Shown: piece by piece, positions 811 to 50,727 of the stretch
Position numbering within the stretch: the stretch's first letter is position 1
Layout of the letters: each line of letters starts with the position of its first letter
Position numbers and translations under genes: made by a program
Sequence record: MK250027.1
Length of the DNA: 64,000 nt
Direction: 5' to 3' (one strand)
Notes under the pieces: generated by a model
Databases searched by the model: none
What the model was told of the DNA's origin: nothing
Seen by the model: the letters and a program-made list of their open reading frames with translations, nothing else

Positions 811-963
811 TTCTTAGTTTTAGTTTTTAAATTAATTATTTTTAAAAACCTATGTTTCTTGTTTCATAGACACACTACTTTTTAGTATAGTTATTATTTA
901 TAACTTCTGTCATCCATAGTTAGTATCTCCACAAGCGTAAATTCGGTAAAACTCAACCCTATT
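811..963 (-). mobile_element. Orphan TnpB right-end/omegaRNA-like scaffold with no tnpB
   Basis: Shares ATAGGGTTGAGTTTTACCGAATTTA(C/A)GCTTGTGGAGATA, TATGAAACAAGAAA(C/T)ATAGGTTTTTA and AAAAACTAAAACTAWGAAG with the 3' flank of tnpB at 32438-32562. Confidence 0.75.
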
Positions 964-1278
964 TTAAACTATTAAATTTAATTTTTTCTCTTCTTGCTTA
1001 TCATTTTTATTCTTCATATTCTTTCTACTTTCAAAAAGTTTCTTATCATATGGACTTAATTCCCTACAATTAGCACATATAAAAACTTTCAATGGAACTT
1101 GTGTAGTTTCTGAACCTTGACCAATAAGCATGCCAGGAACTTTCTTAAAAATAATACCAGGTATAAAAACCTCACATCCACAATTTGGACATACTTCTGA
1201 AGGATAATCTAACGGATTTACCGCTGGCATATTTGCATTAGTACCAGCGGCATTTCCAAATAGTTTGCTATTTTCCAT
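964..1278 (-). CDS. Zinc-ribbon hypothetical protein
   Basis: CPNC...CANC pairs; ends TAA; start overlaps the upstream stop. Confidence 0.75.
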   Translation of the reverse strand: MENSKLFGNAAGTNANMPAVNPLDYPSEVCPNCGCEVFIPGIIFKKVPGMLIGQGSETTQVPLKVFICANCRELSPYDKKLFESRKNMKNKNDKQEEKKLNLIV

Positions 1279-2387
1279 TAGTCAACTTTATTTTCTTCTT
1301 TTTCTGCATCAGCTGCAGCTTCTTCAGCCTCACGACGTGCAATAACAGCATCACGTTCATCAGATGGTACATCTGACAAAATTACACGATTCTTCTCAAT
1401 CTTATGTACATATACCTGTACATTTGCACCTGCAGGAATTTCATTATTTCTCATTGCCTCGCGAGTCTCATCCTTTACAAGTGTCTTATGCAACATACCT
1501 GTAATAAACTCGTCAAGCTCGACGAACACACCAAATGAGGTTGTACCTGTTACTTTACCCTCAAATACATGGTCCTTATCATTCTCCAACAAATCCTCAA
1601 GTTCACGAAGCTTGACTGGAAGCATTGTTCTCAAGAACTTCTTACGTGATACAACAAAACCATAATTTGGATCATAAGATTCAATCATAACCTCAAACTT
1701 AGTACCAACCATGCTCTCAAAATCAGTTACACGGTTAGCTGCTGCCATTGAACCAGGCATAAATGCCTTAACCGTATTCATAATATCAACAACAAATCCA
1801 CCCTTATTAGTAGACAAAATTGTTGCGTAATATGCCTTAGACTTCTTGGTAATCTGTTCCTTCATCTCTCTCTCAAGAGTTTCAACATAACCATTCCAGA
1901 TAGACGCTTTCTCAACATCACCCTCTGTAATCTTAGCATTCAAATCCATACCAAGAAGTTGTTCCTTAAACTTAGGGTCCTTCAATGCGGTTACAAACAT
2001 ATCCTTATCCATTGTCTTATCATCACCGACATTGAACTGATTAAAGAACTGATGTTCCTTATTAAGATCAACGATAACATTGTTAGAACCACCATTAATT
2101 GTCAACATCAATGTATCATCATCAATAGGATCAATATCAGAAATATGCACAAGTGCATTCTTAATAAGTTCCTTACTACCAATTACATGAACATTTGCAT
2201 ATGCATCATACAAATCCTGTGCATAAGATTCATGACTATAAACTTTCTCGTTATTCTTTGTCTTAATATTCTTATTTACCTTAAGTGAAGTACCATTCCA
2301 TCCATCATCATATGGACTCCAATCAAATGAACCCGGTGTTGGTTCGCCCCATTCATAACGTTGGGTCAACTCATTAAATTTCGCCAT
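1278..2387 (-). CDS. Ribosomal protein bS1-like protein (two S1 domains)
   Basis: Two S1 repeats: ATILSTNKGGFVVDI..AFMPGS..FVVSRK and FEGKVTGTTSFGVFVEL..GMLHK. Confidence 0.85.
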   Translation of the reverse strand: MAKFNELTQRYEWGEPTPGSFDWSPYDDGWNGTSLKVNKNIKTKNNEKVYSHESYAQDLYDAYANVHVIGSKELIKNALVHISDIDPIDDDTLMLTINGGSNNVIVDLNKEHQFFNQFNVGDDKTMDKDMFVTALKDPKFKEQLLGMDLNAKITEGDVEKASIWNGYVETLEREMKEQITKKSKAYYATILSTNKGGFVVDIMNTVKAFMPGSMAAANRVTDFESMVGTKFEVMIESYDPNYGFVVSRKKFLRTMLPVKLRELEDLLENDKDHVFEGKVTGTTSFGVFVELDEFITGMLHKTLVKDETREAMRNNEIPAGANVQVYVHKIEKNRVILSDVPSDERDAVIARREAEEAAADAEKEENKVD

Positions 2388-6244: not shown

Positions 6245-6340
6245 AATCTTTATATTTAAATTGTTAATATTTATGTTTATTATTTACATTACAAAGATAC
6301 ATAATATTTTCCTAAATAAAAAATATATTACCTAAAATTA

Positions 6341-6874
6341 TTAAGAATTTAAATAATTATGAAATGAACCATCATCAGAATCTCCAATAAGATTGTTCAA
6401 TACATGCCAATACTCAAGATAACGCTTTGCTTTCTCCATATCCTGTGTTTCTTTCTCCTTATGGTCAGATCTCCAAATATACTTAAATGAATTCAACTTA
6501 CAGAAATCCATTGTTGCTTGTTTTCCAAATGTCTGAAGCATAGCTTCTATACATTGTAAGCCATTACCACCAGCGCCATAATGATTTGGATGTTCAACAA
6601 CATTCAAATTCTGTGTACTAAAAATAGGATTTAATTTTGTCTTATGTAATTGTAAATGTGCAGGTTCATCCTTAAATACAATCTTCTCATAATTCAACGG
6701 TTCTCTATTCTATTCAGCTACATTATCACTAATAGGTTCACCACATTTCTCGTCATTATCTGTTGCAACTTCATCGGTTCTATTAGAAACAAATACAATA
6801 TCTTTATCATCCTTTGTACGTGTAGGTTCACCATATACAGGTTCCTATGTACGAGTTTCCTTATTATAACTCAT
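6341..6874 (-). CDS. DUF3310-domain protein (2 TAG read-throughs)
   Basis: VEHPNHY...CIEAM...FCKLNSFKYIWR..HK...DMEKAKRYL; frame extends through two TAGs to ATG 6874. Confidence 0.8.
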
Positions 6875-8813: not shown

Positions 8814-9752
8814 TTATAAATTAAATTGTTCTTTAATTTTATCCCATTTTCTATGTAATATATCAGAACATTGTATAGCATAATTATATAATTTAATAAC
8901 ATCATTTTTCCTTGAAAAATATGCTTGTATACAACCATGATTATCTATACGAAGATGAAAATTAATATTATAATACTAATCAATAATATCAAATAATTCA
9001 ACATATAATGGTTTCCAACTAATATGATTACTTATTGATATTGATATACCTGTTCTTGATTTTGAAATACAACCATCACCATCTAAAAACCCTATTAAAA
9101 AATATATTAAATACGTTTTATCATAGAATATAGAAATATTTGGTGAATTATATGTTTTCTACTTATCAATCAGATTAAATATTTTTTTCCATTTTTCACA
9201 AAAACATTTATCTCCTATACGTATACTACAAGTTGTATATTTTCCAAAAGTTGAATCTGCTTCACGTTCTCGAATAGTAGTATTTAACCTATTAGCTAAT
9301 AACTAAAGATTATTTTTATCTCTATTTGAAATAGAAATAATAAATTCATTTTTTTGTGATATACAACCATCTGCTATAAAAAATCCCCACCAATAATAGA
9401 CTTCCTTATTATTTAAATTATTCATAAAACTTAAGTTTCCGTGTCTACGTCTATCTATATTATGAGGAAATTTCATACGTTCACACGCTTGAAATTGTAT
9501 AGCATTATAACTAAGAGTTGGAAATGCATCTAATAATTCCTATTTAGATGCATTATACCATAACTCTTTTAGTTTTGCATTATTTTCATCAGTCCATTTA
9601 AAATTACAATGTATTTGTAACTCATGTGCTTTTTTCTTTATAGCGCTTTTTGTTCTATTTGGTAATAAATTAATACATTCAGTTAATCCTGATATAGGAT
9701 AATACTATTTTAATATATTAATTTCATTTTCATTCCAAAATTTATACTACAT
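8814..9752 (-). CDS. Free-standing double-motif LAGLIDADG homing endonuclease with N-terminal Myb/SANT-like repeats (6 TAG)
   Basis: Code-15 translation, 312 aa: YYWWGFFIADGCI and YFLIGFLDGDGCI motifs; N-terminal WNENEINILKQYYP..LPNRTKSAIKKKA and KWTDENNAKLKELW; codon 2 is TAG. Confidence 0.85.
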
Positions 9753-11546: not shown

Positions 11547-12092
11547 TTATGCAGCCTGTCGAACTTCCCAATCAATAATATCAACAACATACTTTTCCTT
11601 GTTGATAGAAATTGACTTAATATTCTTAAGTGAAAGTGTTCTATACTCAATAACAGAAGTACTTGCCTTTTTCTTTGGCATGAATCTCTTCATATACACT
11701 TCATCTTCTGCAGAAATCTTCTCACCATTAAGAATAATATTATTCTTTGAATAATTATTAGGAATGTAAATCAAACATACATTACCTGTACTAATATATT
11801 GCATAACAACATTCTTTACAAGATGACGGCGATTTGTATCTGTTGCCTTATAATCCTCACCAAGAATCTTACTCATTGTCTTTTCATAATCCTGTCCAAA
11901 ATGGAAAGTAACTGAGAAATCTGTGCGTGGTTGAAATCCATCCTTAATATGTTCCTTAGGAAGACCATCTGTATTAAACTTATTCAACTTAATATCAGAC
12001 TCACCATATACAGTGACATACTTACCGTTGCACTTTGCGTTAGACATAAGCTCGATAAACTCATCTACTGTTGTAATAATATTGTTGTTCAT
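11547..12092 (-). CDS. Hypothetical protein (early)
   Basis: ORF follows the promoter motif at 12140-12150. Confidence 0.75.
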   Translation of the reverse strand: MNNNIITTVDEFIELMSNAKCNGKYVTVYGESDIKLNKFNTDGLPKEHIKDGFQPRTDFSVTFHFGQDYEKTMSKILGEDYKATDTNRRHLVKNVVMQYISTGNVCLIYIPNNYSKNNIILNGEKISAEDEVYMKRFMPKKKASTSVIEYRTLSLKNIKSISINKEKYVVDIIDWEVRQAA

Positions 12093-12120
12093 ATTCTTTA
12101 TATTTTTAATTGTTCAACTT

Positions 12121-12150
12121 AATTGTTTTATTAACAATACAAAGATACAT
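12121..12150 (-). promoter_or_regulatory. Class-I (host sigma-A-like, early) promoter RTGTATCTTTG, representative copy
   Basis: Matches the Bacteroidota -7 element TAnnTTTG; copies at 6292, 12140, 13473, 16341, 30840, 31162, 46904 (-), 40826, 44839 (+) and variant 50000 (-); five copies continue TATTGTTAATAA. Confidence 0.8.
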
Positions 12151-12186
12151 GTTTTATTTCAAATAAAAAAATATTAGAAGAAAAAA

Positions 12187-13063: not shown

Positions 13064-13470
13064 TCTTTAATTTTTCTACCTAAAATATTTTTTAACATCC
13101 ATACCAACATATTAAATGCAACCAATAATTTATTTTCTGTATCATCAGTCTCTTCTGAATGAACTATATTATCACCTTTCATATTTTCAAGTTTCACCGA
13201 ATAACTATCAATAACCATATAATATTCTGTACTCATAGTCAAATCTTCAATACGACGGTATAAATCTTGAAGAGTATATGTATAATAACCTAATTTATAC
13301 TTAACTAATTGTTCACAATAATCTTTGTGCATATTTACATTATATTGATTTTTACCAATATAAATTAATGAAGCATCTGAAATATCAAGTCCAAGCTTCA
13401 CCAATATATCCATATTATCTTTTGATAATGTAATTGTATTCTCTTTCATATATATAATTTTTATTAACAA
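13060..13470 (-). CDS. Hypothetical protein (early); start uncertain
   Basis: Follows the promoter motif at 13473-13483. Confidence 0.65.
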   Translation of the reverse strand: MLIKIIYMKENTITLSKDNMDILVKLGLDISDASLIYIGKNQYNVNMHKDYCEQLVKYKLGYYTYTLQDLYRRIEDLTMSTEYYMVIDSYSVKLENMKGDNIVHSEETDDTENKLLVAFNMLVWMLKNILGRKIKE

Positions 13471-13563
13471 TACAAAGATACATATTTTATTTTAAATAAA
13501 AAAGAGATATAACAAAATAATCTGTTATACCTCTTATAAAATATATCTTAAAATAATAAAAAA

Positions 13564-14577
13564 TTACATAATATATTGTAAAAGCATCTATGTTTCCTCA
13601 TCAGCTTTTAATTTTGGATATGCAGCTCTAAGTATCTGTAATACACGTGTTTCTGTCATTCCATGTTCTTCTGCAACTTGCCATGTATTCTTTTCACCAC
13701 GTCCATTAATACCATAGCAATCACATACAATTTCACCATCTCTTTCACCAAGAACTCTCTTTACATTATCTTCAAGTTCTCTTTCAAGATCAGCGTTATT
13801 AAGATTACTATCAGGGTCTTTAAATGTCCTATTAGCTGTTACATCACCTAATGTTGTTTTAGAATCATCATCATCCCCGTATGATTTATCCAAACTATTT
13901 GCACGTGTATTTGCTTCCATTGTTTGTGCAAATGTTTCATATTTCAAATCTGGATGTTTCTTTACGAGAACATTATAAATATCATCAATATCAGGTTCAT
14001 AACCATTCTTATTATATAATTGATCCTTGATACGAGCGGCTTCACGAGCAATACTACCCATATTACGGGGAACTGCCATATGTCCACCTACCTCATCAAC
14101 AGCAGTCATAATTTCTCTACGAATATACCAAATAGCATAAGAAACAAAACGTACATCTTTACCTGGCAAACTTGGATCATATGTATCTGCTGCTTGCATA
14201 AGTCCTATATTTCCATATTGAATCATATCTTCCTTTGGTATATTAATATTTTTATACTTATTGACAACAGAAATAACAAATGGAAGATTTGCGGACACCA
14301 ACTTATTCTTTGCCTTTTCAATTTCTCTCTTATTATCAGAATGTTGAATAATATCAGCAAGTTTCACTTCATCTGCATGTGATAATTGTTTTTTCTTATT
14401 AATAGCATGTAAATATGCAATAGTAGACTTTGCTGTATTTTCATCCTGTGTAATAGCAAAATCATCATGCAAATCCATATGCATTCCATTATTAGCTTCA
14501 TTGAGTTTCTTTCTAATAGTCTTAGAAACATTTCTCATGATACTTTCATACAATGTCTTCTTTTCATTTAACTTCAT
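13564..14577 (-). CDS. RNA polymerase sigma-70 family factor with N-terminal LYESIM leader
   Basis: Region 2 LVSANLPFVISVVNKY..DMIQYGNIGLMQAADTYDP..RFVSYAIWYIR; region 4 HTH VAEEHGMTETRVLQI; the TAG at 13588 read through extends to TAA 13564. Confidence 0.92.
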
Positions 14578-14609
14578 ATCTTGATAAAAATTATTTCAAT
14601 ATTTTAAAT

Positions 14610-14618
14610 ATTTATCTT
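14610..14618 (-). promoter_or_regulatory. Class-III (T4-late-like) motif ATAAATA, representative copy
   Basis: Upstream of the sigma gene, lysozyme, 21030, fibre genes, 37069, 46857, 50582, 53867 and 62155; short and AT-rich, so partly expected by chance. Confidence 0.5.
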
Positions 14619-14671
14619 AAAATAAAAATAGAGAATAGTTATCGCAACTACTCTCTATTTATAATTATCTA

Positions 14672-16293: not shown

Positions 16294-16541
16294 AATTCTT
16301 TATATTTTTAATTGTTTATATTCTTATTTTATTAACAATACAAAGATACACATTATTTTTGATATAAAAAAGAAAACATAAAGAAATATCAATTTTTATA
16401 GTAAAAACAATTAAAATTCTATAGAAATCTTATTAAATTTTATAATATTTTTTAAACAAGTATAGATGTACTGTAAAAAGAAAAGTCTACCATGACTTAC
16501 ATCATAATAGACTTATAGTACATCTTTAAAAATAATATCTG

Positions 16542-16637: not shown

Positions 16638-16643
16638 ATATAG

Positions 16644-16716
16644 CAGGCCTGATGAGATTCGAACTCACAACAACATGATTAAAATTCGTGTGCTCTACCA
16701 ATTGAGCTACAGGCCC
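16644..16716 (-). tRNA. tRNA-Lys(UUU)
   Basis: GGGCCTG/CAGGCCT acceptor stem; GCTC/GAGC D stem; loop ATTTTAA; one mismatch in the anticodon stem; GTGAG-TTCGAAT-CTCAT T arm; CCA not encoded. Confidence 0.88.
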
Positions 16717-28117: not shown

Positions 28118-29377
28118 TTACTTATTCACTGCAAGAATTGCACATGAACTATTAACAATGAGATTTACATTTCCCTTAAATTCATCAATAGTTCTCTTAT
28201 CTGTATAACTCATTGCAGATCGCATATAATCAATCATATTATCAGTCCACTGTTTTACTGTTTCTTTCACTGTAATATACTTTGTACAACCTTCTGAAGT
28301 CTTTGTTTTTGCTGATGGATTAATTAACTTTTGAGCCTTCTTTGTGGACATTCCGTAAGACTCTTTTGTAATAGTCTTCATATCCTTAATAAAGTCTTTT
28401 TTCTGTTTTTCAAGTTCATCTGAAATAACAGGATTTTCAGAATTTAATCCTTCCCAAATATTAAGAATGTCTTCTACTCCATTATTAATAATACCATCTT
28501 TATAAAAATAAAGATAATGATTATTATAACTTTCAATATTCAATGGTGCTGTTGACTCAAGAAGTCCTGTAAACAAACTTCCAATCATTACATAATCTGC
28601 ACCAAGACCTAATGCTTTAATTACATCTGCATAACCACGAATACCACCATCTGCAACAAGGTAAGGATGTGACTTAAAATAACTTGTTGGATTATCATTT
28701 TCATCAAATCCCTTGTCAGCAATATTCTTATAATATTTACACTTATCAATCAATGATGCAATAGGATAATGAATTGAAGAATTTGAAGTAGTTAAACACA
28801 CGGATCCGCTTCCTATAGACAGTCTGATATAGTCCACGCGAGCATGCTTACAAATCCACTCATAAGTTTCAGGATTAGCGATATTACCTGTCATTACAAT
28901 GAGTTTATAATTACTATTATCAGCAATATCCTTTGCCTTATTAATAGTCTCATACAAACTTTCCATATGGCCATTTGCTAAATCCACACAAATCCTATAT
29001 GTTCGATTATATCCAGAAAATATTTCATCAGGTGACATCATCTTATGATCAACAAAAACATATTCAAACTCTTTCAATGACAATGCAACCCAATCGCCAT
29101 CATCCATAAATGGTTTAATATAAGAAATCCTGGTTTCAATATCTCCATTAGGTGCAGCTCCTATATTTCGTGGAATCATTGGATGAATCTTATTCAACTT
29201 CCAAATGTTAATATTATATTCATTCGTAATAGTAGACATAGGTGCAGTAAACAGTGGAAGATACTTATTATCTTCCACAAATGGATTACATTCCTTTCTA
29301 CTCTTAATTGAACTAATAACAGCTGGTTCAATTGTCAAATCATTATATGAATACTTTGTATCTTTAATAATCGGCAT
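28118..29377 (-). CDS. guaC: GMP reductase / IMP dehydrogenase family protein
   Basis: TAPMST, VDLANGH, GNIANPE, IGSGSVCLT, ADGGIR..DVIKALGLGADYVMIG, YGMST. Confidence 0.8.
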   Translation of the reverse strand: MPIIKDTKYSYNDLTIEPAVISSIKSRKECNPFVEDNKYLPLFTAPMSTITNEYNINIWKLNKIHPMIPRNIGAAPNGDIETRISYIKPFMDDGDWVALSLKEFEYVFVDHKMMSPDEIFSGYNRTYRICVDLANGHMESLYETINKAKDIADNSNYKLIVMTGNIANPETYEWICKHARVDYIRLSIGSGSVCLTTSNSSIHYPIASLIDKCKYYKNIADKGFDENDNPTSYFKSHPYLVADGGIRGYADVIKALGLGADYVMIGSLFTGLLESTAPLNIESYNNHYLYFYKDGIINNGVEDILNIWEGLNSENPVISDELEKQKKDFIKDMKTITKESYGMSTKKAQKLINPSAKTKTSEGCTKYITVKETVKQWTDNMIDYMRSAMSYTDKRTIDEFKGNVNLIVNSSCAILAVNK

Positions 29378-29413
29378 TTTTATTCTTTTATTATTTCTAA
29401 ATATTATATATAA

Positions 29414-29617
29414 TTAAATACTCTTTGTCTTATTAATTACCATTGTAATAAAATCATGTCTCTCTACATAATCCTTACTCTGACAATCATGTTTTACCAA
29501 CAGATATGCATCGATAACTTTCTCTATAAAATCATGATCGTATCGTTTTTCAAGTCCTTCTTCAAAACCTGTTTCATATCCATTATTATATTCTTCTTGC
29601 AAATCTTTTTCTGTCAT
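29414..29617 (-). CDS. Hypothetical protein
   Basis: ORF in operon. Confidence 0.6.
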   Translation of the reverse strand: MTEKDLQEEYNNGYETGFEEGLEKRYDHDFIEKVIDAYLLVKHDCQSKDYVERHDFITMVINKTKSI

Positions 29618-29640
29618 AATTATATTACTGTTTTATTTTA

Positions 29641-30186
29641 TTACCAAAATACAATAGGACTATCACTTTGATTAGTAATCAATAATCTTCTATTAGTTGG
29701 ACAAGATGGATAATCACTCAATCGATGAACACTGCCTACCATCATTCTTCTAGAATCTGAACATCCATAATGTGGTTGACAAAAATCATAATGAATACGA
29801 ATAAACTTAAAATCATCATTAACTTCTACTGATGTAATAGACAATGAATCAATATTAATATAGTGAGAATTTTCAATATTATTATTCAAACTATTATTAT
29901 GCATCTTAATCCATTCCATATCATTCTTAATAGCCGAAGTTAAATCAATACTCAAAAATACAGAATATGTATCTACAATCTCTGGAGATTCATGGTCTGC
30001 TTCTGTAAAGAAATCAAGAAATACTCGTTTATCCATTGTATCAGACTTCTTATATTCATCTCGCATTGTAGCTACATGATCAATAACTAGATCGCTCTTA
30101 TTCTTTGATTTATTTGAGTCTCCATGTTCATCTACCCATTTGATATACATGCCTCCTCTATTCTTAGGATAAAAAACTTTTGTCAT
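29641..30186 (-). CDS. Hypothetical protein
   Basis: ORF in operon. Confidence 0.65.
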   Translation of the reverse strand: MTKVFYPKNRGGMYIKWVDEHGDSNKSKNKSDLVIDHVATMRDEYKKSDTMDKRVFLDFFTEADHESPEIVDTYSVFLSIDLTSAIKNDMEWIKMHNNSLNNNIENSHYINIDSLSITSVEVNDDFKFIRIHYDFCQPHYGCSDSRRMMVGSVHRLSDYPSCPTNRRLLITNQSDSPIVFW

Positions 30187-30196
30187 AATTTTTATT

Positions 30197-30373
30197 TTAA
30201 TCAGTTATATATTTTGCTTTATAAGTTTTATAATTATTAATAATATTAATCCATTCTTCTTTTGTAAGTCCAGTTATTTCACAACCTTTTTTATAATCAA
30301 ACATATTAATTTCTCCAGACATTTGAAGATGATAATATGCATCAAATTTCTCTTCTGTAATTTCTACTTTCAT
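30197..30373 (-). CDS. 58-aa hypothetical protein
   Basis: MKVEITEEKFDAYYHLQMSGEINMFD..TGLTKEEWINIINNY; below the ORF-track cutoff. Confidence 0.65.
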   Translation of the reverse strand: MKVEITEEKFDAYYHLQMSGEINMFDYKKGCEITGLTKEEWINIINNYKTYKAKYITD

Positions 30374-30385
30374 ATATTAATTATA

Positions 30386-30802
30386 TTATTTGTTATTATT
30401 AATCATATCAATAAGTTTACCGACATTATCATAAAGTGTTCCCAACTCATAAAATGCCATAAATTGATTTGTTACTTTATGATATGTAGGATTACATACA
30501 TTTATATCAATGAACAGATTTTCACAAAGGTTTGAAATATACATTGATTTCTTATCTTTCTTCTTCGATATTTTTTCAGCTAATGGTTTCAATCGAGAAT
30601 TTGCAAACTTAATTACGTCATTATAATAATTTACAATGCCCTGTTCATACTCATAATCTGATACATATACAGTATTCTTATTTAATGTAAGAACATAATA
30701 ATCAGAACACATATCAGATGTTCGTGTTACATGCAATTTATTATCTGCATTTGCAATTACACACATGAATGAAAGAACCAATGTTATAAATATATGTTTC
30801 AT
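30386..30802 (-). CDS. Putative exported protein (signal peptide)
   Basis: MKHIFITLVLSFMCVIANA; follows the promoter motif at 30840-30850. Confidence 0.7.
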   Translation of the reverse strand: MKHIFITLVLSFMCVIANADNKLHVTRTSDMCSDYYVLTLNKNTVYVSDYEYEQGIVNYYNDVIKFANSRLKPLAEKISKKKDKKSMYISNLCENLFIDINVCNPTYHKVTNQFMAFYELGTLYDNVGKLIDMINNNK

Positions 30803-30871
30803 TTTATATTATTTTAAATTATTGTTTTAATTAACAATACAAAGATACATATTTTATTTTGAATAAAAAAA

Positions 30872-31135
30872 TTAATATGAAATTATTTTACTAATTTGTG
30901 AACAATATCCGTACCATTCTTTACCTTTATATATAACACAGAAATCTCCATTTATATTAAGAACTCGTTGACCAGCAGAATTAAATACTGCTATAATTTC
31001 GCAATCGACAAAACCTTTATCACCTCTATCTTCGTTCATTAAATGAATATTAATAATAGTTCCAACACGAATATCTCGTATAGTGAAATGCTTTTTATCA
31101 ATATCGTCTTTATTATTTTTATTAAACTTAATCAT
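30872..31135 (-). CDS. Hypothetical protein (early)
   Basis: Follows the promoter motif at 31162-31172. Confidence 0.65.
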   Translation of the reverse strand: MIKFNKNNKDDIDKKHFTIRDIRVGTIINIHLMNEDRGDKGFVDCEIIAVFNSAGQRVLNINGDFCVIYKGKEWYGYCSQISKIISY

Positions 31136-31258
31136 ATATTATTTTATTAATGTTTATATAACAAAGATACATATAATTTTATAAAAAAGAAAAAGAGATA
31201 CTATAAAAATACAGTATCTCTTTAAATTAAATTATTAATTAAACTTTCTAAAAACTTA

Positions 31259-32302
31259 TTACTTTACAGTAACAATAGCAACACGACCAAAATCATCATC
31301 CATACCATGACCTGTAGCATCAGTTACCTTAACACCACGAGACTCAAGATACTTCTTAACTGCTGTTGCACGTGCATCAGACAATGCCTTATTATGCTTC
31401 TTAGCACTCTTAGGTTCCTGAGATGCATAAGCGTCTACAACTACAGTTGTTCCTTCAGGAATTGCATCAAGTACGGACTTACACTTTGCACTCAAATTTG
31501 AGCTATTAAACTTAAATGGTGCAACAAATACATTCTGTGCATAACCACTTGCATTTGTAACAGGTTTCTCTACAATCTTCTCAATTACCTGTGGCTCACG
31601 AGACTCAAGTTCATTAATCTTTTTATTAAGAGCATCAATCTCTGCCTGATCATAAAGCTTTGCCTTTGCAAATGAACGTGTTCCATTTGAATTCTTGAAA
31701 CGATAAACAACACCTGCAGTAATCTCAAAACTACCATTCTTCTTTACAAGCTTGCCATTATCAATATCATTCCATACAACAGAAGGATTTACAACAATAC
31801 CCCATGCACGCTCCTTACCAAGATTAAAATTAAACTCTGCACCAGCACGATAAGTCATCCAGTTATTATGATCTGCACCATAACCTGCAGTCTGATGACC
31901 CCAACCAAGACCTGTATAAACAACAGGTTCAAAGAACTTACGTGTTCCATCAAACTTAAATACATTAGCAAGATTTACCTTACCATAACCACTTACATTT
32001 ACATAATCAAATGCAGTGTATGTATTATAACTACCATGACCTGTTCCAATAAGTGTACGACCTTCAATACCAAATCCCAACCATGGTGTTACATACTTAT
32101 CTGCACCAACTACAATAATAGGTGCCATTGCTGTATGACCACTATAGAAATTGTCAAATGATGTAAGAACACCACCCTGAAGTGTTACTGAAACATTATC
32201 AGTAAACTTACTAGAACCTGCATAATCATTCTGTACCTGTGCATTAATTGTACCAATTGCAAATGTAAACATTGCAATCAACATAAAAATAAACTTCTTC
32301 AT
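31259..32302 (-). CDS. ompA: OmpA-family outer-membrane protein (Bacteroidales type)
   Basis: Signal peptide MKKFIFMLIAMFTFAIGTINA; amphipathic beta-strands ending ITAGVVYRF; C-terminal peptidoglycan-binding VDAYASQE...NKALSDARATAVKKYL. Confidence 0.85.
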   Translation of the reverse strand: MKKFIFMLIAMFTFAIGTINAQVQNDYAGSSKFTDNVSVTLQGGVLTSFDNFYSGHTAMAPIIVVGADKYVTPWLGFGIEGRTLIGTGHGSYNTYTAFDYVNVSGYGKVNLANVFKFDGTRKFFEPVVYTGLGWGHQTAGYGADHNNWMTYRAGAEFNFNLGKERAWGIVVNPSVVWNDIDNGKLVKKNGSFEITAGVVYRFKNSNGTRSFAKAKLYDQAEIDALNKKINELESREPQVIEKIVEKPVTNASGYAQNVFVAPFKFNSSNLSAKCKSVLDAIPEGTTVVVDAYASQEPKSAKKHNKALSDARATAVKKYLESRGVKVTDATGHGMDDDFGRVAIVTVK

Positions 32303-32437
32303 AGTTTTTCTTTTAATTTAAAATTTGTTATTAACTAAAAAATTATTTGTTTAAAATATTTGATTTATTAAAAATCATTATCATAATAATATATAATAAA
32401 CTTCTTAAAAAGTTTACATTTTATAAAAATAAACTTC

Positions 32438-32562
32438 TTCATAGTTTTAGTTTTTATTTATACTAAAAACCTATATTTCTTGTTTCATAAATACATTATA
32501 TATTAAATTTATATATAATTCATATCTCCACAAGCTTAAATTCGGTAAAACTCAACCCTATT
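32438..32562 (-). ncRNA. Putative TnpB omegaRNA/right-end scaffold
   Basis: Immediately 3' of tnpB; conserved with the copy at 811-963, including a GTTTTTA/TAAAAAC hairpin. Confidence 0.65.
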
Positions 32563-32577
32563 TAATATTTTAAATAA

Positions 32578-33711
32578 TTATAAATTAATTTGTCTTAATC
32601 CTTCTGATAAAATATTCAAAGAAGCATTATAATCTCTATCTATTAAAGATTTACAATGTGGACATATCCACTTGCGCTAACTTAGTTTTAAATCTTTATA
32701 AATATATCCACAATTATGACATGTCTTTGATGAAGGATAGAATCTATCTATTATAACTAAATTTTTATTATACCTATTACACTTATATTCAAGTTGTCGT
32801 CTGAACTCAAATAAACTTAATTCCTATATGGACTTAGATAGTTTATGATTAGACATCATTCCATTTACATTTAAATCTTCAATACAGATAACTTGGTTCT
32901 CATTAACTAGTTTTGAAGTTATTTGATGTAAATAATTTAATCTCTAATTCTTTATTTTCTCATGAACTTTTGCAATTTTAACTCTTACTTTATTTCTATT
33001 AATACTGTCTTTCTATTTCTTAAATAATTGCCTCTATAATTTCTTTAATTTATTTTCTTGATTTTTATAAAAATGCTTATTCTCATATCTATTTCCATTT
33101 GAATCAACAATAAAATCTTTAATTCCTAAATCTAATCCTATTACATTATCTAACTTTTCTTTTTCTTTAATATTATAATCAATACATATTGATAGATAAT
33201 ATTTGTTTGTAGAAGTTTTAGTAAGAGTAACAAAATGAATTTTATCTTGATTATGATTTAAATATATTTCATCTTTTCTTGAACACTTAAATAATATATT
33301 TTTTAACTACTTTATTAAAGTTATTCTATTTCCTCTAATTTTTTTATTTTTAAACTTAAACATTGAATTAGTAAATCTGCAAGATTGTTTAGCATCTTTT
33401 TTAGATTTAAATTTAGGATAATATGTATATGATTTTAAAAAATTATCATATGCTTTAATTACATCTATCATTGATTGCTATAAACATGCATTATATACAT
33501 CATTTAAAAAAGAATATTCATCTTGCTTCCTTAAAGAAACTAAATATTTACCTAACTATGATAAAGAAACAGATTGCTTATATTGTTTATATATTAATTT
33601 TTTATAATCTAATAATTTATTATATATAAATCTACAACAACCTAATTGTTTAGAAATAAATTCTTTCTAAGCAACATCAGGATATATTCTTATTTTAATA
33701 GATTTGATCAT
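32578..33711 (-). CDS. tnpB: TnpB RNA-guided endonuclease, intact under code 15 (377 aa, 9 TAG)
   Basis: HTH IRIYPD..LGCCRFIYN; YPKFKSK; RuvC-I IGLDLGIKD; KVHEKIKNQR; RuvC-II ICIEDLNV; Zn finger SSKTCHNCG..WICPHC; RuvC-III DRDYNAS. Confidence 0.92.
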
Positions 33712-33780
33712 ATACAATAAAATTATTTATATAATATAAAATTAACTTCTTAAAAAGTTTACATTTTATAGAAATATTTT

Positions 33781-34449
33781 TCAAATTGGTTTTGGACAAA
33801 GTTTAACTAACTTACTTCTCAACGAATTTAATATAGGTTTAAACTTAGTTTTATATTCATCCCAATTATTACCCATCATTTGAATCTTTATCCAATATGG
33901 ATTTGCTTCACTATAATCATATATCTTTCCATATTCTGCAATTTGAATACCAAACATATATAATCTTATACAATGAAAAATAGATTTTTTTGCCCTATAT
34001 AAATCATAATCTTTTTCTATAATTAATTTCTTATGACATTTTGCATATGAGTTATTAACAATAGAAGAAATAACTTTCCTTAATTTCCATTTATCAAGAA
34101 TGAAATAATTCGCGTATAACGAGTTAAATTTTTCAAAACTATCATACATACTACTTTTCATAAATAAGCTCTCTAACGCGATTATATGATGTTCATATAG
34201 CATCTTTTTAAATGTATTATTATTGATAATCTGAAAATCAAAATCAATAGCATTTCCATCAAATACATGAAGTTCCGTTATACCATTATAATCATCTGTT
34301 AATTTAATATCATCATCTACAATAACAATAATATCCTTATCTGATTTTTCATTATTAGTCCCATATACATAAGATCCATGCATAAAAGATAATATATAAT
34401 GTTCACGTATATTTAATGGTAAACATTCCTTTATAAGTTTCCAATCCAT
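33781..34449 (-). CDS. Pol-beta superfamily nucleotidyltransferase
   Basis: HGSYVYGTNNEKSDKDII (GS..DxD motif). Confidence 0.85.
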   Translation of the reverse strand: MDWKLIKECLPLNIREHYILSFMHGSYVYGTNNEKSDKDIIVIVDDDIKLTDDYNGITELHVFDGNAIDFDFQIINNNTFKKMLYEHHIIALESLFMKSSMYDSFEKFNSLYANYFILDKWKLRKVISSIVNNSYAKCHKKLIIEKDYDLYRAKKSIFHCIRLYMFGIQIAEYGKIYDYSEANPYWIKIQMMGNNWDEYKTKFKPILNSLRSKLVKLCPKPI

Positions 34450-34452
34450 AAA

Positions 34453-34875
34453 TCATTCAACTAAATCATATTCTAACTTATGAAATATTATTCTCTTTTC
34501 CTTTAAAAGTTTATCCAATAATTCATTAAAATCAAATTTAACGGTAGTTAATGAATCATATACTAAATTTGGTACTTTATATAATTTGAATAATTGCTCA
34601 AAATTCGCAATTATACCATTATAAAGTTTTTTCTCTGATGTATATGTATGTTTACCTTTATAATTAAGAATAAGTTTACCATCTAATGTAGCATACCACA
34701 TATATTTCTTCTTATTATTCTTATTAATTAAAGGTTTTGTTATTTGATCAAAAAATGAATCATCTATATCTATCTCATCATTTAACTCTATTTTATTATC
34801 ATGGTTAAAATCAATACGTTTCTCAATATTAATCTTTACTTTCATTTTATTATCTTTGTATTTAAAAGAACACAT
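34453..34875 (-). CDS. Hypothetical protein; true start probably MKVKIN near 34845
   Basis: ORF in operon. Confidence 0.6.
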   Translation of the reverse strand: MCSFKYKDNKMKVKINIEKRIDFNHDNKIELNDEIDIDDSFFDQITKPLINKNNKKKYMWYATLDGKLILNYKGKHTYTSEKKLYNGIIANFEQLFKLYKVPNLVYDSLTTVKFDFNELLDKLLKEKRIIFHKLEYDLVE

Positions 34876-35225
34876 GGTTTACCGATATAAAAAACACCAG
34901 GAATTTCCTTAAATTCTTTCATTAGTTTTTTAGTTTCACGTTTTAATTTATTCAAATATGTTTTATATGCTTTCTCTCTGTTATGGTCTATCCATGCATC
35001 ATAATAATCTTGTCTAGAAAAATCTTCACGCTTTTTATCATACCATTCTATATCAGTAAACTTATTAATGTATATTTCCATCGCTTCTTCTATAGAATTA
35101 GCTGATATATGATAAGTTTCAGTTATTACTTTAACATCATCTTCATAATCGTCTTCTTCTATAGATATGTCTGTATAACAAAATATCTTTAATGTATTAT
35201 TTTGATTTTTAAACTTTACACTCAT
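34842..35225 (-). CDS. Hypothetical protein
   Basis: ORF in operon. Confidence 0.65.
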   Translation of the reverse strand: MSVKFKNQNNTLKIFCYTDISIEEDDYEDDVKVITETYHISANSIEEAMEIYINKFTDIEWYDKKREDFSRQDYYDAWIDHNREKAYKTYLNKLKRETKKLMKEFKEIPGVFYIGKPCVLLNTKIIK

Positions 35226-35336
35226 TTATAATATTAATTAGTTATACTCTTTATATGTAATATAAAATAAAAAAGTCTTAACATATTATAATAATATAAT
35301 ACATTAAGACTAAAAACTTAAAAATAACATGAAAAA

Positions 35337-35861
35337 TTATTTCTTATTATTACAATTAACAATAACCTTATTATATACATCTAATAATATATTATCATTA
35401 TTAAATGCTATATCTATATCAGATGTAAAAATCATTGATAATGGAATAAACATTATATCATCAACTTCATTAGGTTCAGAATGTTCACTTGTTAATTCAT
35501 AATCATCTATTATTCCTGGAAGAATTGCATAATAAATTACGCTTACATTCTGTCGCTTTGTATCTGGAATTGAATTAATGGCATAAAAATTCATCAATAC
35601 TCTTGGGATAGAAATACCTGTTTCTTCAAAGGTCTCTCTCATTCCACATTGACATAAATCCTCATCATGATCCAAATAACCAGCTGGAACATTCCACCTT
35701 CCTACATTTGATGGACATCCTTTACCGCGTTTATTAATTAATGCACACCAATTTTCATCTGAATCTTTACAGAATACACAAGTCGCAACAGTTATTGAAC
35801 GAGAATACCAATATTTTTCACCGTTATATTCAAACTCAAAATTTCGTAATCTCTGTTTCAT
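35337..35861 (-). CDS. NUDIX hydrolase
   Basis: NUDIX box PAGYLDHDEDLCQCGMRETFEETG. Confidence 0.9.
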   Translation of the reverse strand: MKQRLRNFEFEYNGEKYWYSRSITVATCVFCKDSDENWCALINKRGKGCPSNVGRWNVPAGYLDHDEDLCQCGMRETFEETGISIPRVLMNFYAINSIPDTKRQNVSVIYYAILPGIIDDYELTSEHSEPNEVDDIMFIPLSMIFTSDIDIAFNNDNILLDVYNKVIVNCNNKK

Positions 35862-35880
35862 TTATTAATATAATTTTATT

Positions 35881-36414
35881 TTAAAATGTTCCTGTAGAAC
35901 CAGCCATTCCATCTGCCCTATCAGATTTCTCTATCTTATTATAATCATCTTCACTCATTTCTTTCCAATCTGTATCAAGATAAATCTGATGGATAAACTG
36001 AACAAGTTTCTGACCTGTCTGAACTGTAATATCTGTATTTCCATTATTACAAAGATTAATATGAACTTCTCCCTGGTAATCTGCATCAATAGTATTTGCC
36101 ATTACATCAAGATGATATTTAGAAGCGACACCAGATTTATTTGTTGCTTGAAGATATGTTCTTTTATCATTAATCCAAACTTTAATACCAGATGGAATCA
36201 TTACTTGCTCACCTGCAGGAATAGTAATAAACAAATCATCATCCTTAATATTATAGAAAATTTTGTTACCTTCATTCTTCTTAATCAAATCAACAAGAAA
36301 CTCCTAATTATAGAAAGGTACGAAAAAATCAGTTCCTGCATCATGACTATTAGCTCTATTTGGCAACTTAACATTTCTAACTCTTGTAAACTATACTGTA
36401 GTATTATAACTCAT
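35881..36414 (-). CDS. dut: Trimeric dUTPase (177 aa, 2 TAG)
   Basis: Motif I LPNRANSHDAGTDF lies upstream of an in-frame TAG; NKSG, TIDADYQGE, KLVQ and RADGMAGSTG motifs. Confidence 0.92.
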
Positions 36415-36526
36415 TCTTTATATTAAAAATAATTTTTATATTATATGAATATATGTTAATAAAGTTTAACAAAATAATTATTAATAATACTTAAAAAATA
36501 TTTTCAAAAATAGTAGACTTTTTTCA

Positions 36527-37012
36527 NNNNNNNNNNNNNNNNNNNNNNNNNNNNNNNNNNNNNNNNNNNNNNNNNNNNNNNNNNNNNNNNNNNNNNNNNN
36601 NNNNNNNNNNNNNNNNNNNNNNNNNNNNNNNNNNNNNNNNNNNNNNNNNNNNNNNNNNNNNNNNNNNNNNNNNNNNNNNNNNNNNNNNNNNNNNNNNNNN
36701 NNNNNNNNNNNNNNNNNNNNNNNNNNNNNNNNNNNNNNNNNNNNNNNNNNNNNNNNNNNNNNNNNNNNNNNNNNNNNNNNNNNNNNNNNNNNNNNNNNNN
36801 NNNNNNNNNNNNNNNNNNNNNNNNNNNNNNNNNNNNNNNNNNNNNNNNNNNNNNNNNNNNNNNNNNNNNNNNNNNNNNNNNNNNNNNNNNNNNNNNNNNN
36901 NNNNNNNNNNNNNNNNNNNNNNNNNNNNNNNNNNNNNNNNNNNNNNNNNNNNNNNNNNNNNNNNNNNNNNNNNNNNNNNNNNNNNNNNNNNNNNNNNNNN
37001 NNNNNNNNNNNN
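36527..37012. other. Assembly gap (486 N)
   Basis: Run of N. Confidence 1.
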
Positions 37013-45549: not shown

Positions 45550-45768
45550 ATGATTTATGAAATGAATGTTAAAGAAGAACCAGATATTTTTAATGAATTA
45601 AAAAAATATCTTCAAAATACATATAAACTTTCTGTTGTTGAATCTATTAATTTAATAGGTAAAATAGAAAATTTAATTAGAAAAGAAACCGATAAAATTA
45701 TAAAAAATAGAAAACCATTTGAAATTGATTTTAATAAAATTGATTTAGATGATATTTTAGATGTTTAA
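45550..45768 (+). CDS. Hypothetical protein
   Basis: ORF. Confidence 0.6.
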   Translation: MIYEMNVKEEPDIFNELKKYLQNTYKLSVVESINLIGKIENLIRKETDKIIKNRKPFEIDFNKIDLDDILDV

Positions 45769-45788
45769 AAATAATTAATTGTTAACAA

Positions 45789-46259
45789 ATGAGTTTATAT
45801 AAATATCCAAGTATACATGGTTTGAAGGATATTGCAATGATTTATAATGATTCTGAATGGGATAATGCAAAACTTAAAGTGTGGGATCCTGAATATCAAA
45901 GAGAATATAATATATCATTTACAGGTTCTACAAGACCAACTGAAACTGAACCAGGTATAGTAAGTTTCAATATATCAAAAGTAAAAGACGAAAAATCTGC
46001 TGATGAAAAATCAATAGATATTTATTTAGATAAAAGATTTCCTAATATATCTAAATTAGAGAGAAACAAATATGAATTGATTTTTAGAGCAGGTGTTGAA
46101 TATGGAAAGAATGTAAGTAAAAAAGATTTACTTAAAGAATTATTTAAATCACCATGTGAAAAATGTGGTAGTTATATGATGTCAGATAATTGTATTTGTA
46201 ATAAATTATATAACTATTGTGATTTTATAGAAGAAATAAAGAAAAGGATAGAGAAATAA
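45789..46259 (+). CDS. Hypothetical protein with Cys cluster
   Basis: CEKC..CIC..YC near the C-terminus. Confidence 0.65.
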   Translation: MSLYKYPSIHGLKDIAMIYNDSEWDNAKLKVWDPEYQREYNISFTGSTRPTETEPGIVSFNISKVKDEKSADEKSIDIYLDKRFPNISKLERNKYELIFRAGVEYGKNVSKKDLLKELFKSPCEKCGSYMMSDNCICNKLYNYCDFIEEIKKRIEK

Positions 46260-50084: not shown

Positions 50085-50582
50085 TTATAATTCTATTATT
50101 TCTAATTTATTATAAGGTATTATTCCATTATAAAAATATGTTGGATCTATTTCATCTTCAGATTCTTCATCATATATGTTGTTTTGATCTAAAGAAAGTT
50201 TATTTAAATCAATATCAGATGTTTTAATTTTAAATACAATAATTTCTAATTCTTTTTCATATCGATCTTCATATTCTTCAGCAAACTCTTCAAAATCATC
50301 GGAACATTCCAAATATGATTCCGCAACATATTCATCTGTTGCTAAAAAAACACCATGACTTATATTTTCATATGGCGTATTTTCATAATTCCAAAATCGT
50401 TTCTTTGGTATTTTTGCACCTAACCCATTTTTCTTTATTGAACGCAAATAACAAGATGGAGTTGCATGATAAAAATATTCAGGTATATTATAATTGATTG
50501 TTTCATTAATTGATTTCTTTACAGATTTAGAAATAGATTTTATTATATTTTCATATAATGTTTTCTTTTGTATAGAATTCAT
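50085..50582 (-). CDS. LYESIM-leader protein with ADP-ribosyltransferase-fold (KptA/Tpt1-like) domain
   Basis: YFYHATPSCYLRSIKKNGL..GVFLATDEYVAESY pattern (H-x-T..SI..GL; V-[FY]-L); leader MNSIQKKTLYENIIKSISKSVKKSINE. Confidence 0.65.
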   Translation of the reverse strand: MNSIQKKTLYENIIKSISKSVKKSINETINYNIPEYFYHATPSCYLRSIKKNGLGAKIPKKRFWNYENTPYENISHGVFLATDEYVAESYLECSDDFEEFAEEYEDRYEKELEIIVFKIKTSDIDLNKLSLDQNNIYDEESEDEIDPTYFYNGIIPYNKLEIIEL

Positions 50583-50727
50583 AATTTTACATAAATTAAA
50601 TTTTATTTTTATATTTATATGATGATATACAATGTAAATTTATAATAAATAATACATTAAATAAGACATTTTTATAATTATAGAATATTTAATAATAGGT
50701 AAGGTAGAATATTAAAAGATTTAAATT

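Follow-up and report, generated by a model that had tools for sequence, protein, structure and literature searches.

The 64,000-nt stretch of DNA analysed here (the window) belongs to the genome of the gut megaphage Lak-B8, a Prevotella phage; its positions 29000-36527 are 100% identical to positions 215000-222526 of MK250027.1. On the minus strand of the window a tnpB gene lies between two other phage genes and is bracketed by direct repeats. How did this gene come to its place without a transposase, and does it still move? An earlier note on this DNA had proposed that the module spreads like a homing endonuclease. In part this is consistent with our results: the TnpB is intact and lacks tnpA, alleles without the element exist in relatives, and a sister copy is polymorphic. 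The copy in the window itself, however, is fixed, has lost the left end of its family and has a degraded omegaRNA. We therefore favour, with moderate confidence, the interpretation that the window module is a 5'-truncated, rearranged copy of a Lak-specific TnpB/omegaRNA element of the IS200/IS605 type, whose family would have spread by homing whereas this copy would no longer be autonomous.

The TnpB protein is intact and conserved

Dozens of long open reading frames (ORFs) in the window require TAG as a sense codon. Because so many of them are open only in this way, the genome itself demonstrates that TAG is read as Gln in Lak-B8; Lak phages have already been published as TAG-recoded. The tnpB region contains an ORF of 379 codons (32578..33717, minus strand) which is open only if TAG is Gln; under translation table 11 its longest piece has 54 amino acids (aa). 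The family alignment places the probable start at the ATG at 33711, which gives a coding sequence of 377 codons (32578..33711, minus strand) with nine TAG codons and a TAA stop at 32578-32580. Three Pfam domains were found in the product (HTH_OrfB_IS605, OrfB_IS605 and Cas12f1-like_TNB, E from 1e-15 to 1e-24), and their order, i.e. helix-turn-helix, RuvC (OrfB_IS605) and zinc ribbon, is the one expected for TnpB. Over its full length the protein aligns with the solved structure of ISDra2 TnpB (8H1J/8EXA; E=9e-56, ~40% identity). The RuvC residues D196, E280 and D362 (P0001 numbering) align with D191, E278 and D361 of ISDra2, both CxxC pairs of the zinc ribbon are kept, and four of the nine TAG positions coincide with a Gln of ISDra2 TnpB. 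ORF and alignment thus agree with the earlier observation that the RuvC triad and the zinc finger are intact only if the nine TAGs encode Gln.

With the NCBIfam model guided_TnpB the protein scored 310 bits (cut-off 100). Typing gave 361 bits with IS200_TnpB versus 175 bits with IS607_TnpB, and by these scores the window TnpB appears to be of the IS200/IS605 type rather than of the IS607 type.

Between the window tnpB and eight paralogs dN/dS was 0.15-0.22 as a pairwise average, not a branch-specific value, and equalled the values between the paralogs. Within Lak-B the module differs at two positions over 1601 nt, and both are synonymous tnpB sites. These results suggest that purifying selection still acts on the window TnpB, and because of them it seems that the protein was conserved while the adjoining RNA region drifted. 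The copy is fixed: it is present in 9/9 Lak-B genomes and in three IMG/VR relatives, and no presence/absence variation was found among 12 Lak-B-type genomes. A fixed copy with only two synonymous differences gives no sign of current spread.

A six-frame search with the model of Y1 TnpA (PF01797) gave no match above the cut-off in Lak-B8, A1, A2 and C1; control genomes did respond. The absence of tnpA, noticed before in the window, thus extends to four Lak genomes. No serine-recombinase TnpA adjoins the window tnpB either. The sole serine recombinase of Lak-B8 (P0003, 201 aa) is encoded at ~516.6 kb, ~300 kb from the window tnpB, and scores 172 bits with the equivalog model of the IS607 transposase (cut-off 110); this only IS607 transposase sits beside a different ORF of 449 aa. 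At that locus (L021, Lak-B8 record 516453-518457, outside the window) the serine transposase gene has 5 TAG codons and the ORF that follows it 11. The 449-aa ORF (P0002) matched neither Pfam nor a solved structure and gave a sub-threshold match to the TnpB N-terminal model; possibly, it is a very divergent TnpB-like partner of the transposase.

The repeats are part of a tandem duplication

As the earlier note had described, a 33-bp repeat is found both upstream of tnpB and past its right end (32399-32431 and 33744-33776); 32 of the 33 positions are identical. The similarity can be extended to 46 nt at 93% (32386-32431 and 33731-33776) and to 83 nt at 76%. A 21-nt core of the repeat occurs twice in 64 kb, compared to 0.11 expected occurrences at up to three mismatches. 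Copy 1 (33731..33776, containing what had been taken as the right copy, 33744-33776) lies directly upstream of tnpB and is homologous to the single segment found upstream of ompA in element-free ("empty") alleles. Copy 2 (32386..32431, containing the former left copy, 32399-32431) is followed by the intact leader of the ompA-like gene and overlaps the guide copy by a 9-nt microhomology, TATTTTTAT. A further repeat had been missed: 32423-32460 copies 32283-32320 at 92%, with 26 nt exact (to 32283-32308), and comprises the ompA leader, the ATG and the next 17 nt.

On the minus strand, the nucleotidyltransferase gene is followed by repeat copy 1, ~11 nt of leader, the last ~21 nt of the element's left end and tnpB. 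After tnpB come the omegaRNA and the right end, 18 nt of ompA, repeat copy 2 (with the TATTTTTAT overlap), the full leader and ompA. At this locus the upstream segment of ompA, its leader and its first 18 coding nt are duplicated in tandem, and the element lies within the first copy. The repeats around tnpB are not a target duplication made by a transposase; elements of the ISDra2 type make none (Karvelis 2021, PMC8612924). Nor can they be read as marks of homing, as had been suggested, since they belong to this larger duplication, and two other loci with this layout have a repeat that is not a promoter.

Empty alleles were found in Lak-A1, A2 and C1 and in two IMG/VR contigs. There the nucleotidyltransferase and ompA genes are adjacent, with one repeat and no tnpB. 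A metagenome contig from a closer relative (~92-97% identical over the aligned parts) joins 32348 to 33736 with 53 other letters between them (joint X3). The existence of empty alleles with a single repeat, which the earlier note had named as the test of its proposal, was confirmed in these relatives.

We also considered the repeat as a recurrent promoter module. This was rejected, since the window has two copies, shorter versions are not enriched and the sigma-70 scan is flat: the promoter-box motif of the repeat did not recur in the window (10 found versus 6.4 expected), and sigma-70-like matches were not enriched (16 versus 18.7). The repeat copy upstream of tnpB may drive tnpB now. When sequencing runs were searched, none shared more than 12% of the words, and none of those matched was an RNA run; the metagenome contigs gave no information on expression.

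The left end is lost, the right end is kept and the omegaRNA is degraded

Lak-B8 has three tnpB copies which are ~80% identical in protein; genomes of Lak-A and Lak-C have three or four. The main paralogs (~75-80% identical) contain 7-17 TAG codons per gene. In the protein database there are well over 100 Lak TnpB clusters at ~80% identity, many on 500-kb contigs; a metagenome scan for the family yielded few new loci. The family alignments used here comprised 13-17 distinct tnpB copies with their flanks.

Ten paralogs have a left end of ~210 nt upstream of the ATG in common. With a 210-nt left-end reference no BLAST match was obtained at the window tnpB. Homology to the paralogs begins ~21 nt upstream of the ATG; the window copy retains the last ~21-24 nt of the left end (33712..33735, minus strand) and lacks ~190 nt. 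Another copy in Lak-B8, B8_c, retains ~5 nt. With regard to the two ends of an IS200/IS605 element, the right-end hairpin is present at the window copy and the left end is absent apart from these ~21-24 nt.

In the family, the right end closes with a hairpin followed by ~9 nt that end in ...CTAT (or TTAT). The terminus of the window copy occupies 32441..32475 (minus strand), with the subterminal hairpin at 32449-32471 and 8 nt ending ...CTAT at 32441, the last base of the element. This boundary is drawn because a hairpin is predicted at the same position in 14/14 paralog tails with differing sequences, because a 42-nt tail is common to four loci of a more distant subfamily, which then diverge, and because the tail sequences occur only beside elements, genome-wide in two 550-kb genomes. 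A right end directly after GAAACAAGAAA was dismissed: the guide would then match no empty allele, and the next ~35 nt belong to the element. The similar right flanks could also reflect a guide-directed choice of a repeated native motif, against which the genome-wide counts argue (element-adjacent occurrences only).

All copies have a scaffold 3' of the tnpB stop, with invariant blocks and covarying long-range stems. The omegaRNA scaffold of the window copy (32476..32613, minus strand) overlaps the 3' end of tnpB. It reached 81.9 bits with covariance model R1, the lowest score, versus 116-171 bits for the 13 paralogs from which the model was built. The region has a GC content of 18%, and the omegaRNA lacks an internal hairpin of ~23 nt and about half of the positions in two otherwise invariant blocks. 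No Rfam family matches the omegaRNA.

The guide position copies the start of a gene

Directly after the right end, the guide position (32440..32423, minus strand) holds an 18-nt copy of the ompA-like gene beginning with the G of its ATG, within the exact 26-nt repeat with 32283-32308. Its sequence matches the ompA start 19/19 in the empty alleles of Lak-A1/A2/C1 and IMG/VR. The genuine ompA start with its leader (32283..32310, minus strand) matches the guide 18/18 and is a potential self-target. Hence the earlier suggestion that a guide from the right flank cuts the empty allele is consistent with the target sequences, but the ompA start of the phage itself matches equally well. A homing element should find its target in empty alleles and spare its carrier; the target is there (19/19), whereas an identical one is present in Lak-B8 itself.

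This arrangement is common in the family. In 9 of ~15 distinct loci, the terminal AT of the right end is continued by a G and a real ORF, which has 156-216 codons in five of these loci. The element interrupts a start codon. Its right end supplies the ATG anew, together with an A-rich leader, and the guide consists of the first ~16-20 coding nt of the gene that follows. As judged from element-free relatives, the insertion sites are all A/T-rich ...AT|G: the sites at ompA, at the gene after the copy B8_b and at 45790|45791, and the internal sites for B8_c and for an orphan omegaRNA. They suggest a roughly defined transposon-adjacent motif (TAM) that is A/T-rich and ends AT.

At the B8_b locus, an IMG/VR relative (L039, compared with L010) lacks the short ORF after the B8_b right end, which has 48 codons in Lak-B8. 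This ORF was apparently deleted between two copies of ...AAAACTA(A)TG, and through the deletion the right end is fused to the next start codon.

Related loci show the same layout or a clean insertion

Two further loci resemble that of the window tnpB. B8_c (L014, Lak-B8 record 91427-95554, outside the window) is a tnpB copy that lacks the left end and contains 12 TAG codons. The repeat on its two sides, 51 nt long (77 nt including a diverged part), is the last ~54 nt of the upstream gene with its stop and is single in the empty alleles of Lak-A2 and Lak-C1. The functional copy of this repeat and the guide-side copy differ at synonymous positions beside the inferred TAM. The second locus is an orphan omegaRNA in the window (855-999, minus strand), which has no tnpB and is well preserved (119 bits, above the tnpB-linked window copy). 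Its 38-nt flanking repeats (964-1002 and 772-809) correspond to the 3' end of a 104-aa ORF, directly after whose stop the omegaRNA begins; at this site Lak-C1 has one repeat copy and no insert. At both loci the repeat is the 3' end of a gene and not a promoter, the copy beside the upstream gene is the one that functions, and the left end has been lost.

A fourth, complete copy (the sister copy, L042) is inserted at 45790|45791, in the start codon of the ORF 45789..46259. It is carried by Lak-B1-B6 and B9, three IMG/VR contigs and the metagenome contig ERZ808258, and is absent from Lak-B7 and B8. Presence/absence polymorphism was found only at this site, not for the window copy. The insertion is clean at ...AAAT|G, with no target duplication. 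The flanks (570 nt to the left, 430 nt to the right) are identical between the alleles; the only exceptions are a patch no further than ~35 nt to the left of the junction and two synonymous changes at positions 7 and 10 of the would-be target, where they affect codons 3 and 4 of the following gene. Such a distribution is compatible both with co-conversion by a diverged donor and with escape of the target, and does not distinguish gain from loss.

The 17-mer TTTAAAAATAATTAATT occurs only twice in the window, at 830-846 (minus strand) in the right-end hairpin of the orphan omegaRNA and at 45764-45780 (plus strand), where it belongs to the native left flank and lies ~10 nt before the polymorphic insertion site. 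The Lak-C1 leader at the latter site is similar to the TTTAAAAATAATTAATT region.

A possible history of the locus

On the reading we favour, the element originally inserted within the start codon of the ompA-like gene. Recombination with an allele that lacked the element, unequal and mediated by microhomology, would then have placed a complete upstream segment of ompA with its leader and ATG on the downstream side of the element, with the junction at TATTTTTAT, 18 nt past the right end. ISDra2 TnpB cuts in a window of 15-21 bp (Karvelis 2021, PMC8612924); as the junction lies within this range, it would fit the repair of a nuclease break. A deletion would have taken most of the left end and part of the leader, and thereby brought tnpB beside the other copy of the upstream segment. 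The direct repeats would then be scars of the recombination that restored the control region of ompA.

The related loci could be accounted for in a similar way. B8_c and the orphan omegaRNA would each require one step only, an illegitimate, unequal crossover of an occupied allele with an empty one that was favoured by selection because the disrupted neighbour is repaired. A crossover of this kind would also cover the right half of the window locus, while the loss of the left end there would need a second deletion. Without TnpA, the family as a whole would have passed between co-infecting Lak phages through RNA-guided cuts in element-free alleles and their repair by recombination. Translation of TnpB would be delayed until TAG is read as Gln.

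The 5' truncation, the shared 3' end and the flanking repeats might also suggest an RNA-mediated (retro-type) insertion. No reverse transcriptase was found in Lak-B8 or Lak-C1, and for this reason an RNA route is less likely; unequal recombination is the simpler explanation.

Several points weigh against a rearranged copy that has lost its autonomy. The history of the window locus requires at least two events. The empty alleles of Lak-A/C are ~20% diverged from Lak-B8, and the closer one from the metagenome is not readable base by base. The outer stems of the window omegaRNA still pair through compensatory changes, and because of this the RNA may still be functional. The nuclease activity of the window TnpB is predicted from its sequence, and the averaging in the dN/dS values bears on the argument from selection. 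Lastly, the protection of the carrier poses a problem. The ompA start of Lak-B8, 140 nt downstream, has the same 18 nt and the identical 8 nt upstream; hence, on the present sequence, a working guide of the window copy could not tell its own genome from that of a competitor. In addition, the right end itself ends ...TAT, which fits the roughly defined TAM and leaves the sparing of self unexplained.

Is the window copy active today?

According to the interpretation we favour, the window copy is probably not an autonomous homing unit any more, because it has a perfect target in its own genome and a degraded omegaRNA scaffold. Its TnpB may work with the omegaRNAs of other copies.

Alternatively, the module could be an active RNA-guided homing unit today which cuts the empty ompA alleles of co-infecting phages, with the repeats helping or marking the process. 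We regard this as rather unlikely. The nuclease motifs are intact and the protein is under apparent purifying selection, but the scaffold, despite its retained outer stems and terminal hairpin, has lost blocks that are invariant in 13 paralogs. Empty alleles exist and match the guide position 19/19, yet the genome of the phage offers the same 18-nt target in the same 8-nt upstream context. The sister copy is polymorphic, whereas the window copy varies in none of the 12 Lak-B-type genomes. Moreover, the easiest template for repair of a cut empty allele would be the intact ompA copy of the donor, and its use would not transfer tnpB.

To a role in trans we assign a smaller probability still. Here the window TnpB would load omegaRNAs from elsewhere, i.e. 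the two tnpB-linked ones and the orphan at 855-999, and thereby serve in the competition with related phages or in keeping those elements in place. This would account for a protein that is conserved while its own RNA is degraded, and the ~80% identity of the paralogs in protein and the nearly invariant scaffold cores would make cross-loading plausible, although this is a supposition from sequence comparison and the other two copies each have their own tnpB. The well-preserved, tnpB-less orphan omegaRNA in the same window (119 bits) would be a natural partner, but may be a mere deletion remnant. Very improbable, finally, is a functionless relic, immobilised by the rearrangement and with its ORF intact only because too little time has passed: the lost left end, the degraded omegaRNA, the fixation and the missing transposase would fit, but while the RNA region drifted to 18% GC the 1.1-kb ORF with nine sense TAGs acquired no frameshift, TAA or TGA, its dN/dS is 0.15-0.22, and both differences within the clade are synonymous.

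Relation to known systems

The window TnpB shares with ISDra2 (Karvelis 2021, PMC8612924) the domain order, the RuvC DED triad and the zinc ribbon. As in ISDra2, its putative guide RNA would overlap the end of the gene, extend into the right end and take its guide from the flanking DNA. In contrast to ISDra2, the element resides in a phage without Y1 TnpA, is TAG-recoded, and rebuilds the start codon of the next gene with its right end. The TAM of ISDra2 is TTGAT, whereas that of the Lak family is apparently A/T-rich and ends AT. Unlike ISDra2, the window copy has no left end and is embedded in a duplication.

Homing of TnpB independent of TnpA ("non-restorative") into co-infecting phages or plasmids has already been set out in a 2026 review on OMEGA systems (PMC13565253). 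With this concept and with the free-standing homing endonucleases of T-even phages, the Lak family has in common that a nuclease gene lies between conserved phage genes, that the target is a conserved gene sequence of element-free relatives, and that the allele differences at the sister site cluster beside the insertion. In the Lak family, recognition would be RNA-guided and not protein-based as in the T-even endonucleases. Furthermore, unlike those homing systems, the window copy shows neither polymorphism nor a difference between self and non-self.

For a homing endonuclease in an intron of a TAG-recoded phage, a delay until late infection has been proposed (Borges et al., 10.1101/2021.08.26.457843). 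The Lak tnpB is similar in that it encodes a selfish nuclease whose in-frame stops should block translation until the late switch of the code. The published case is a protein-guided endonuclease in a group I intron, whereas the Lak gene is a tnpB with nine TAGs between TAG-free genes.

The guide of the window copy is aimed at the 5' end of a neighbouring gene, which is reminiscent of the TldR proteins, nuclease-dead TnpB repressors that target promoter or start regions. The RuvC triad of the Lak protein is intact, and by this criterion it is not a repressor of the TldR type.

In two main Lak papers, term searches found no mention of transposase, TnpB or IS605, and a full-text literature search gave no description of a Lak-phage TnpB. 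Thus the concept of homing is known, but the Lak family, its habit of splitting start codons and its rearranged copies are not described in the literature we found.

TnpB is the ancestor of Cas12, and its natural role has been described as keeping transposons in place. Spread of TnpB elements between co-infecting genomes without TnpA is mostly a matter of theory, plus a plasmid experiment to which the OMEGA review refers (PMC13565253). The Lak family provides a natural data set on this question, with many paralogs, no transposase, guides at the starts of conserved genes, one polymorphic site with mismatches confined to the junction, and rearranged copies that resemble repair scars. It also represents a mobile nuclease adapted to a recoded genome. 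Conceivably, though we are doubtful, the Lak TnpB family gave up transposition and maintains itself through RNA-guided homing into start codons of conserved phage genes, where the right end rebuilds the ATG. The repeat-flanked copies without left end and the orphan omegaRNA would then have arisen when occupied and empty alleles met in co-infections and underwent illegitimate recombination triggered by the nuclease. If so, the family would document how TnpB moves without TnpA in a natural virus population, and which self-targeting conflicts this brings about.

Neighbouring genes and other features of the window

Over 29000-36527, eight other Lak-B genomes are 99.0-99.5% identical to the window, and Lak-A1, A2 and C1 are ~78-82% identical. 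Downstream of the tnpB module lies the ompA-like gene (31259..32302, minus strand; 347 aa), upstream of it the nucleotidyltransferase-fold gene (33781..34449, minus strand; 222 aa). Both were assigned by Pfam (OmpA domain and nucleotidyltransferase fold), are on the same strand as tnpB and are free of TAG codons.

An ORF with a LAGLIDADG domain at 8814..9752 (minus strand) has six in-frame TAGs; it is a homing-type nuclease that needs the recoded state. No suppressor tRNA was found within the 64-kb window; a tRNA-Lys(UUU) is located at 16643-16716 (minus strand). A fragment of a Thg1-like tRNA-His guanylyltransferase at 2-486 and an S1-domain protein at 1278..2387 are encoded on the minus strand as well.

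The window also contains two families of intergenic repeats of ~60-140 nt that are 72-88% identical (6253-6375, 12085-12186, 13459-13539, 14535-14630, 16306-16371, 30809-30872, 31138-31241 and 50503-50618, both families together). Repeats of these families, which may be shared modules for regulation or termination, also border the insertion site of the fourth tnpB copy.

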